From Macrostomum lignano (lineage: Eukaryota), in the NCBI GenBank assembly GCA_002269645.1, contig NIVC01000680.1, positions 66,397 to 130,396 on the forward strand: DNA of 64,000 bases, read 5' to 3'. Position 1 is the first letter of the stretch, and each line of letters begins with the position of its first letter. This document shows, piece by piece, positions 850 to 45,817 of this stretch. The position numbers and the translations under genes were made by a program. Below the pieces are notes generated by a model. The model was given only the letters and a program-made list of their open reading frames with translations. It ran no database searches and was not told where the DNA came from.

Positions 850-976
850 ATGGTGTCTGCAGCAGCTTTGAATTTGGAAGCCGCCGCACCATTTGCGGTA
901 TGGCGCAGGCTGTCTCTTATCTTCATCCTGGCGGCTGTGCTGTGCTGCGCTGTACAGGAGTCATTCGCTTCGGATG
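850..976 (+). CDS. Exon 1: start and signal peptide ([42 protein letters not shown])
   Basis: ATG at 850; hydrophobic core [15 protein letters not shown] after RR; donor G|GTGAGC at 977 (phase 1). Confidence 0.75.

Positions 977-45817: not shown

Follow-up and report, generated by a model that had tools for sequence, protein, structure and literature searches.

Introduction

The D assemblies of VWF and the mucins, built from VWD, C8 and TIL domains, mediate disulfide multimerisation and pH-dependent packing into granules, and in MUC2 and FCGBP the GDPH motif of such assemblies undergoes autocleavage, which leaves a reactive Asp. Among flatworm proteins, the adhesive protein Mlig-ap1 of Macrostomum lignano (5,407 aa) combines low-complexity Lys/Arg (KR) regions (e.g. 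SRKPRRKNRKSRKP) with a C-type lectin domain, VWD-C8-TIL and 17 EGF domains; its positive charge mediates cohesion, and polyanions such as heparin block this (PMC6410801). Mlig-ap2 contains 221- and 255-aa repeats and thrombospondin type-1 repeats (TSRs), and all ten adhesive-organ transcripts in published screens correspond to Mlig-ap1 or ap2 (PMC6410801). Later catalogues of flatworm adhesive proteins include ap3, with GRKHS low complexity (PMC9229212). Here we describe a gene of the same animal, on the plus strand of a 64,000-nt stretch of M. lignano contig NIVC01000680.1 (hereafter the window, whose coordinates are used throughout). The gene encodes a predicted secreted protein in which a long array of cationic, Cys-rich modules is followed by a single D assembly and two ShKT domains.

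Results

A 40-exon gene for a cationic, Cys-rich protein

The window is eukaryotic DNA of strongly patchy composition that contains minisatellites by the dozen. Stop-to-stop frames on its plus strand include many short segments rich in Cys and Lys/Arg, and each such segment lies between an acceptor of the polypyrimidine-AG type and a phase 1 donor that resembles GTGAGT or GTAAGT. A model rebuilt independently from genomic DNA joins 40 exons from an ATG at 850, which has an in-frame stop codon directly 5' of it, to a stop codon at 45815-45817 (Table 1). GT..AG borders were found in all 39 introns, and the coding sequence of 6,585 nt runs without an internal stop to give a product of 2,194 aa. 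The module exons (exons 3 to 34) are symmetric, of phase 1-1; the two exons that were added to the model last were traced via predicted proteins from other copies of the gene. A regular expression for one of the two module types, type B, recovered 17 true modules on the plus strand and none on the minus strand, against 0.04 per shuffled window. The original prediction, made from the same DNA, had proposed a 40-exon gene for a protein of about 2,200 aa at 850-45817. Start, end, exon count and length were all reproduced in the rebuild and the per-exon Lys+Arg counts matched (12 of 44 residues in exon 7), so the observation is confirmed and the gene in the window is real.

The mature protein has a calculated mass of about 248 kDa, a pI of about 10.2, a net charge of about +390 and 192 Cys. 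Within the repeat region of 1,612 aa, Lys accounts for 14.0% and Arg for 14.3% of residues (28% together), Cys for 9.5%, and Asp and Glu together for only 7%, in agreement with the cationic, Cys-rich composition first reported for the locus. Net charge per module ranges from 0 to +14, every module being basic or neutral. Ser and Thr make up 5.9% and 7.1% of the protein overall, and its core is a Cys/Lys/Arg module array, not a Ser/Thr/Pro-rich core of the mucin type.

Two alternating module types

The 37 Cys modules in A/B arrangement that had been described earlier were found again as 19 A and 18 B modules of about 43 aa each. Type A (41-48 aa) has three Cys in the pattern C-P-K-x5-6-C-x17-19-C-x12, and type B (42-53 aa) has five, in the pattern C-x10-C-x3-(G-Y/F)-x13-C-x-C-x10-C. 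The two types alternate throughout the protein without exception, and fused pairs, in A+B as well as B+A order, occupy five exons. For comparison with other proteins, the family was defined by alternation of A (C-x8-9-C-x17-19-C) and B (C-x10-C-x17-C-x-C-x10-C); the gene's own protein, put through this membership test, gave 34 of 36 neighbouring modules as alternating. Mean identity between copies is 24% for A and 28% for B, and the framework Cys are invariant, a combination that indicates long-standing structural constraint and not recent homogenisation of the array. The A and B profiles can be aligned end to end (hhalign probability 81%, E = 1.3e-5), type A corresponding to type B minus its third and fifth Cys, which identifies the two as diverged subtypes of one ancestral module. 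The total number of Cys is even in 17 of the 18 A(i)+B(i) dyads; pairing as B(i)+A(i+1) gives an even total in 14 of 18. A11/B11, an aberrant pair, carries 4+4 Cys in place of 3+5, and B3 and B13 have two additional Cys in common, located at the Gly of the GY motif and at the junction residue. Cysteine counting thus favours A(i)+B(i) as the putative closed unit.

The structures of an A-B-A triplet and of a single B module were predicted with AlphaFold2, with a mean predicted local distance difference test score of 93.1 for the triplet and 89.6 for the B module alone. Both predictions place three antiparallel strands of 5-12 residues in each module. Two disulfides capping each module and one staple from A to B would, on this model, arrange the modules end to end as a rod. 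Foldseek superposed the triplet on compact barrels with a root-mean-square deviation of about 27 Å, which is consistent, if indirectly, with an extended predicted shape.

No known family was recovered for the module. Pfam searches gave none, either for the whole protein at E <= 1 or for 16 sets of modules at E <= 10, apart from a single chance-level match to Stomoxyn (E = 1.8) in the module sets. The module profile, drawn from an alignment of P0001 and P0004 substrings and contiguous exons (P-numbers denote database proteins), had no match among PDB sequences at E <= 10. Foldseek against the PDB returned nothing significant for the triplet or the single B module, the best matches (E = 0.07 and 1.2, respectively) being unrelated beta proteins; TSR, VWC or similar domains were not among the matches, although fold search is weak for domains of 43 residues. 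The original prediction had been unable to name the A/B module and had called for profile searches and an AlphaFold run: the module stays unassigned after the Pfam, PDB-sequence and Foldseek searches, and the run on the triplet yielded the three strands per module. It had also likened the B module loosely to a Trp-less TSR. Neither sequence nor fold search lends support to that likeness, which comes down to a generic three-stranded topology; TSP_1 was not matched in the 16 module sets at E <= 10, and the WxxW and CSxTCG motifs do not occur in the module alignments.

A D assembly and two ShKT domains at the C-terminus

The array is followed by a VWD domain (Pfam PF00094, E = 1e-26, profile positions 1-155 of 156) and, directly after it, by a C8 domain (PF08742, E = 1.5e-8, 35.2 bits against a cut-off of 23.7). 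The ShK model (PF01549) matched two stretches with 23.1 bits against a cut-off of 20.9, the PDB ShK domain 2mcr was matched with E = 0.003, and both copies follow the pattern C-x8/9-C-x8-C-x8/10-C-x3-C-x2-C. No TIL domain was matched by Pfam at E <= 1 in the C-terminal region, and several canonical Cys are missing at that position. When the C-terminal region was compared with PDB sequences using phmmer, residues 2-349 aligned with whole VWD-C8-TIL units of FCGBP, MUC5AC, VWF and MUC2; for FCGBP the summed E-value was 8.5e-142, or about 1e-26 per unit. Because these alignments run through the TIL domains of FCGBP, VWF and MUC5AC, the domain that follows C8 was taken as a reduced TIL. The VWD-C8-TIL-ShKT-ShKT C-terminus originally read from the sequence is correct, with the TIL taken as a reduced one. 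Pfam found neither a CTCK nor a VWC domain, and the VWD is single and close to the C-terminus. The analogy drawn earlier with gel-forming mucins is accordingly a loose one, in that the D assembly is present and the N-terminal D1-D3, the cystine knot and the Pro/Thr/Ser-rich (PTS) region are not.

Database fragments and described adhesive proteins

In a word-indexed search the repeat region matched four proteins, every one from M. lignano and 60-95% identical; they represent ab initio predictions, in fragments, of this gene or of near-identical copies. The flatworm (Macrostomum) origin that the original prediction pointed to is correct. The C-terminal region returned the M. lignano fragments P0005 and P0007, a fish VWD protein (24% identity) and a weak ShK-containing match, P0008 (33% identity over 20% of the query). 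The module-only fragments P0001-P0004 and P0010 are named 'VWFA domain-containing protein' in UniProt. Pfam finds no VWA domain in them, and the name seems to be an erroneous automatic annotation brought about by the repeats. The models of P0004, P0005 and P0007 include two plus-strand segments of intron 27, at 22126-22320 and 23290-23613 (65 and 108 codons, both multiples of three). As exons these were left out of the gene model: they have no Pfam match, are not Cys modules and would break the A/B alternation. They may be alternative exons, the remnant of another element or a prediction artefact.

No prior description of the gene or the module was found in the literature searched. Identity with Mlig-ap1, ap2 or ap3 is ruled out by the published architectures (PMC6410801, PMC9229212), and the later adhesive catalogues list no protein like this one (PMC9229212). 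Pfam detected no low-complexity Gly/Arg/Lys repeats, C-type lectin or EGF array in the protein, Mlig-ap1 and ap3 being compared by description only. The comparison with ap1 and ap2 that had been suggested for this gene thus ends, on their published descriptions, in a different architecture.

A module family shared by flatworms

An exhaustive HMMER search with an A-B-A profile against 1.84 billion representative proteins recovered 117 proteins at E <= 1e-3, of which 64 were found at E <= 1e-10. Thirty matches were looked up. An organism is named for 21 and all 21 are Platyhelminthes; the other nine are transcriptome or metagenome assemblies and MetaClust entries without an organism name. One of them is W6UV63 of Echinococcus granulosus, a protein of 5,275 aa with 42 matched stretches that is annotated as 'Collagen alpha-3(VI) chain'. 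Other named sources are Sparganum proliferum, Cichlidogyrus casuarinus, Echinostoma caproni, Paragonimus species, Heterobilharzia, Trichobilharzia and Calicophoron, and numerous paralogs from M. lignano, the longest of about 4,100 aa, are among the matches. Some relatives carry VWA, VWA_4, VWD or ShK domains next to the module, and several giants have no Pfam domain at all. A reading of the module as unique to this gene does not hold, since it defines a platyhelminth-wide family of giant proteins. From its sequence matches, the module apparently represents an unannotated family shared by flatworm lineages that is recognised neither by Pfam nor by PDB sequence or fold search.

Using separate A and B HMMs, alternation was significantly enriched in 10 of the 11 members tested, parasites included. 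Since alternation is found both in M. lignano and in parasites, the dyad predates the split of Macrostomorpha and Neodermata. The net charge is positive in every member, at +1 to +9 per 100 residues in the parasite proteins and at +9 to +31 in the M. lignano paralogs and some sequences of unnamed source, most of which reach at least +13; the value for the protein in the window is about +18. Given the weak charge of the parasite proteins, a charge-based function may be specific to free-living lineages. The most extreme polycation of the family is P0019, a member of 1,329 aa with 32% Lys+Arg, 10% Cys and 0.7% Asp+Glu.

Integrity of exon 8

One apparent lesion was found in the gene. In exon 8 (5983-6104/6108), a run near 6013-6016 reads GGG in the window and GGGG in the near-identical P0001, and the frame is shifted within module A4. 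The conserved frame of this exon leads to a strong donor at 6104; the in-frame model uses a weaker donor at 6108, and module A4 loses its third Cys. Homopolymers are a typical site of long-read assembly error. The lesion is either such an error or a real one in one of several copies.

Introns, mobile elements and neighbouring sequences

Minisatellite arrays account for 47% of the locus (850-45817), exons for 15% and transposons for 19%. An array of its own was found in 25 of the 39 introns, with units of 4-55 nt that differ in nearly every intron. The 14 introns that are free of arrays are short (12 of 76-140 nt, the others of 206 and 435 nt). The arrays begin within tens of bases of the donor and stop shortly before the acceptor; it looks as though each of a set of short introns had come to be occupied by an array of its own.

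Intron 28 holds a Ty3/Gypsy-type retrotransposon (26909-30877, plus strand) with an uninterrupted frame of 1,323 aa for gag, protease, reverse transcriptase (RT), RNaseH and integrase. No clean pair of long terminal repeats (LTRs) was found for it. The same 12-nt satellite (TGGGATTCATTT) flanks it on both sides (26701-26905 and 31119-31903), and either the element was inserted into the array or the arrays belong to the ends of the element. A second Gypsy-type element lies on the minus strand of intron 38 (about 39067-43483), with LTRs at 39070-39369 and 43163-43462. Of its open reading frames (ORFs), the one at 41555-43162 covers gag/protease and the one at 39389-41548 RT-RNaseH-integrase. The identity of its direct repeats is 100% over at least 300 nt, a sign of recent insertion. 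A 22-nt satellite surrounds the element and extends to either side of it (38765-39066 and 43484-44196).

Downstream of the gene, an ORF on the minus strand (54343-55170) matches RING, TRAF-type zinc finger and UBZ weakly, with scores below the cut-off, and is probably an exon of a TRAF-like gene. A plus-strand ORF at 59174-60699 has a match to the FLYWCH zinc finger (E = 1.2e-5) preceded by a PHD-like Cys/His segment, and purine-rich tandem repeats of 29-69 nt and tandem repeats of 48 nt lie 5' of it. This ORF may be a domesticated or active transposon-derived gene. Scans for tRNA and Rfam families found no RNA genes in the window.

Table 1 Features of the gene and of its predicted protein (positions in the window unless residues are stated).
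Feature	Position	Strand	Basis
Exon 1: ATG, signal-peptide-like N-terminus (WRR + 15 residues)	850..976	+	Upstream in-frame stop; donor GATG|gtgagc, phase 1
Exon 2: Ala/Pro/Lys-rich linker	1722..1892	+	98% identity to P0001 residues 125-182; phase 1-1
Exon 3: Ser-rich spacer, module A1	3551..3709	+	Splice sites, frame
Exon 4: module B1	3916..4059	+	Splice sites, frame, B pattern
Exon 5: A2+B2 fused	4271..4522	+	Splice sites, frame, B pattern
Exon 6: A3	4604..4726	+	Splice sites, frame
Exon 7: B3 (7 Cys)	5774..5905	+	Splice sites, frame, B pattern, Cys count
Exon 8: A4; 1-nt G-run deletion near 6016; strong donor at 6104	5983..6108	+	Frame comparison with P0001
Exon 9: B4	6185..6316	+	Splice sites, frame, B pattern
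Exon 10: A5	6652..6780	+	Splice sites, frame
Exon 11: B5	6864..6995	+	Splice sites, frame, B pattern
Exon 12: A6	7431..7553	+	Splice sites, frame
Exon 13: B6	7637..7762	+	Splice sites, frame, B pattern
Exon 14: A7	7903..8025	+	Splice sites, frame
Exon 15: B7+A8 fused	9316..9570	+	Splice sites, frame, B pattern
Exon 16: B8	11013..11144	+	Splice sites, frame, B pattern
Exon 17: A9	12262..12387	+	Splice sites, frame
Exon 18: B9	12630..12779	+	Splice sites, frame, B pattern
Exon 19: A10	14428..14559	+	Splice sites, frame
Exon 20: B10	14654..14785	+	Splice sites, frame, B pattern
Exon 21: A11+B11 fused (4+4 Cys variant)	15145..15447	+	Splice sites, frame, Cys count
Exon 22: A12	15790..15912	+	Splice sites, frame
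Exon 23: B12	15996..16124	+	Splice sites, frame, B pattern
Exon 24: A13	16923..17048	+	Splice sites, frame
Exon 25: B13 (7 Cys)	17133..17264	+	Splice sites, frame, B pattern, Cys count
Exon 26: A14	20417..20542	+	Splice sites, frame
Exon 27: B14	21202..21333	+	Splice sites, frame, B pattern
Exon 28: A15+B15 fused	26287..26556	+	Splice sites, frame, B pattern
Exon 29: A16	32016..32141	+	Splice sites, frame
Exon 30: B16+A17 fused	32591..32845	+	Traced through P0005/P0007; phase 1-1 sites
Exon 31: B17	33404..33535	+	Splice sites, frame, B pattern
Exon 32: A18	33624..33746	+	Splice sites, frame
Exon 33: B18	34553..34681	+	Splice sites, frame, B pattern
Exon 34: A19, final module	34774..34914	+	Splice sites, frame
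Exon 35: VWD first half, GDPH motif (aa 1732-1735)	35003..35244	+	Pfam VWD 1e-26; FCGBP alignment
Exon 36: VWD second half (GLCGNCNG)	36230..36549	+	Pfam VWD; FCGBP alignment
Exon 37: C8 domain	37282..37577	+	Pfam C8 1.5e-8
Exon 38: reduced TIL-like domain	38525..38716	+	No Pfam match; aligned over TIL of FCGBP, VWF, MUC5AC
Exon 39: ShKT 1	44279..44428	+	Pfam ShK; PDB 2mcr match
Exon 40: ShKT 2, basic tail, stop	45606..45817	+	Pfam ShK second stretch; stop 45815-45817
AATAAA polyadenylation-signal candidate	45860..45865	+	43 nt 3' of stop
Protein: n-region ending WRR, then 15-residue hydrophobic stretch	residues 1-43		Signal-peptide-like by inspection
Protein: Ala/Pro/Lys/Ser-rich linker	residues 43-113		
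Protein: 37 modules	residues 114-1724		
Protein: VWD	residues 1726-about 1880		
Protein: C8	residues about 1913-2010		
Protein: Cys-rich domain at TIL position	residues 2014-2072		
Protein: two ShKT domains	residues 2081-2117 and 2126-2162		
Protein: basic tail	C-terminal end		

Discussion

We propose, with confidence that is about evenly balanced, that the gene encodes a secreted structural protein in which a disulfide-stapled cationic rod multimerises via the D assembly, binds polyanions and gives cohesion to a secretion. A signal peptide would direct the product to secretion, and the Ala/Pro linker would lead into 37 three-stranded beta units. Each A-B dyad, with its eight Cys, would probably hold four disulfides, one of them between A and B, and the array would form a long, semi-rigid rod, estimated at 0.1-0.15 micrometre, with a net charge of roughly +9 on each module. 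The D assembly, which is FCGBP-like and consists of a VWD with GDPH, C8 and reduced TIL, would probably bring about dimerisation or multimerisation and ordered packing in secretory granules; autocleavage at GD/PH would be possible, and the two ShKT domains would cap the C-terminus. Dimers or bundles, not mucin-like chains, would be expected because the D assembly is single and there is no cystine knot. The protein would then pair with polyanionic glycans or surfaces as their cationic partner, providing cohesion or cross-links, in an extracellular secretion such as mucus or material of the rhabdite type, a glue for eggs or the body, or matrix. The partner domains of its relatives (VWA, VWA_4, VWD and ShK) are all extracellular, which supports the predicted extracellular location, and the heparin-sensitive cohesion of Mlig-ap1 shows that the principle of charge-based cohesion is at work in the same animal.

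Several points weigh against this proposal. The gene model is read from genomic sequence, and, given the deletion in the assembled exon 8, splicing at the strong donor at 6104 would put the coding sequence out of frame. The AlphaFold2 alignments consisted of 16-17 internal repeats only, and the putative disulfide map and rod geometry derive from strand topology and Cys positions, not from coordinates. The TIL domain is reduced and fails the Pfam model; with one D assembly and no cystine knot, linear polymerisation of the mucin kind is not expected. The relatives in parasites are, moreover, far less cationic.

The main rival to a cohesive secretion is a constitutive component of the extracellular matrix or basement membrane, for example in muscle or parenchyma, encoded by a paralog of an ancient flatworm matrix family. 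The module family is conserved across Macrostomorpha, cestodes, trematodes and monogeneans, where the proteins that contain it are 2-5 thousand residues long, the VWA, VWA_4 and VWD partners are typical of matrix proteins, and A/B alternation is retained in 10 of the 11 members tested; but the much stronger charge of the M. lignano paralogs and some unnamed relatives, as compared with the parasite proteins, suggests a lineage-specific specialisation, this gene lacks a VWA domain, and ShKT domains and D assemblies are common in secreted gland products. We consider a matrix role rather unlikely, while giving it real weight. That the copy in the window is a decaying or non-functional duplicate, with function carried by other copies in a polyploid genome, seems decidedly unlikely. 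The 1-nt deletion relative to P0001, the two LTR retrotransposons and about 21 kb of minisatellites in the introns, and the existence of several near-identical copies (P0001-P0005, P0007) are set against 39 other exons that are all intact, their splice sites canonical and their 6.6 kb free of stops; the sole lesion is in a homopolymer, and the transposon insertions are intronic.

Two further roles can be suggested from the charge of the protein. One is a part in the duo-gland temporary adhesive, together with Mlig-ap1 and ap2 or in their manner: the protein comes from the same species as Mlig-ap1 and has VWD-C8-TIL and polycationic character in common with it, and charge-based, heparin-sensitive cohesion is documented for Mlig-ap1 (PMC6410801). 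Such a role is nonetheless very improbable: the KR regions, C-type lectin and 17 EGF domains of Mlig-ap1 were not found here, the ten adhesive-organ transcripts are all ap1 or ap2, and later catalogues contain no such protein. Least probable among these alternatives is a polycationic antimicrobial or surface-protective scaffold, for instance in epidermal mucus. Its extreme positive charge on predicted small, disulfide-stabilised beta modules would suit that role and the closest solved D assembly belongs to a mucus protein, FCGBP, yet no likeness to antimicrobial peptide families was seen beyond the chance-level Stomoxyn match (E = 1.8), and a 248-kDa rod is unlike known membrane-active peptides.

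A wider reading of the module family is possible, and is put forward tentatively. The A/B dyad may be an undescribed, platyhelminth-specific extracellular domain, a four-disulfide pair of three-stranded modules that builds rod-like giants in all major flatworm lineages, human and livestock parasites included, and that in free-living forms has become supercharged (+13 to +31 per 100 residues) as the polycation of coacervate-like secretions such as rhabdites or mucus, glue, or egg cement. By analogy, and with the same reserve, the supercharged scaffold could be a protein-based counterpart of the low-complexity KR regions of Mlig-ap1.

The present work supplies a complete, checkable gene model for a large protein of which public databases hold broken fragments only. 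The module family makes up most of several proteins of 2,000-5,000 residues in Echinococcus, Paragonimus, schistosomatids, monogeneans and Macrostomum, and a phylum-restricted extracellular scaffold would be of value in work on the flatworm matrix and as a marker or antigen specific to parasites. A folded, disulfide-locked polycation would also be a design other than the disordered Lys/Arg regions of known flatworm glues, with a bearing on charge-driven reversible adhesion and on biomimetic materials.

Comparison with known systems

The module is shared with uncharacterised giant flatworm proteins, for example W6UV63, A0A1I8GF89 and PAA86075.1 (both M. lignano) and KAL3317405.1 (Cichlidogyrus), which have the A/B modules (profile E-values 1e-157 to 1e-30), about 9% Cys, retained alternation, and ShKT, VWD and VWA as partners. 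They differ in domain order and size, some carry VWA, which this protein lacks, and the parasite members are mildly basic; no functional description of them was found in the literature searched. TSRs are likewise small extracellular modules, with three long antiparallel strands and disulfides at the ends (both predicted for the modules here), and occur in long tandem arrays, often on phase 1-1 exons, but the pattern and number of Cys differ and A/B dyads are not found in TSRs.

With FCGBP and the D assemblies of VWF, MUC2, MUC5AC and MUC5B the protein has in common a VWD-C8-TIL unit aligned over about 350 residues, with GDPH at the start of the VWD and the GLCGNxNG motif; FCGBP, VWF and the mucins are secreted, disulfide-rich and multimer-forming, common ground with the protein predicted from this gene. 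It has one D assembly, at the C-terminus, as compared with 13 in FCGBP and D1-D2-D'D3...D4 in mucins and VWF. Unlike the mucins and VWF it has no PTS region, VWC or cystine knot, and most of its length is the unrelated cationic module array. Mlig-ap1, from the same animal, resembles it in secretion (predicted here), in VWD-C8-TIL, in a very high Lys+Arg content and in a Cys-rich domain region. The charge of Mlig-ap1, however, lies in low-complexity KR regions, whereas here it lies on Cys modules that are predicted to be folded, and where Mlig-ap1 has a lectin and 17 EGF-like domains, this protein has two ShKT domains and no lectin or EGF array.

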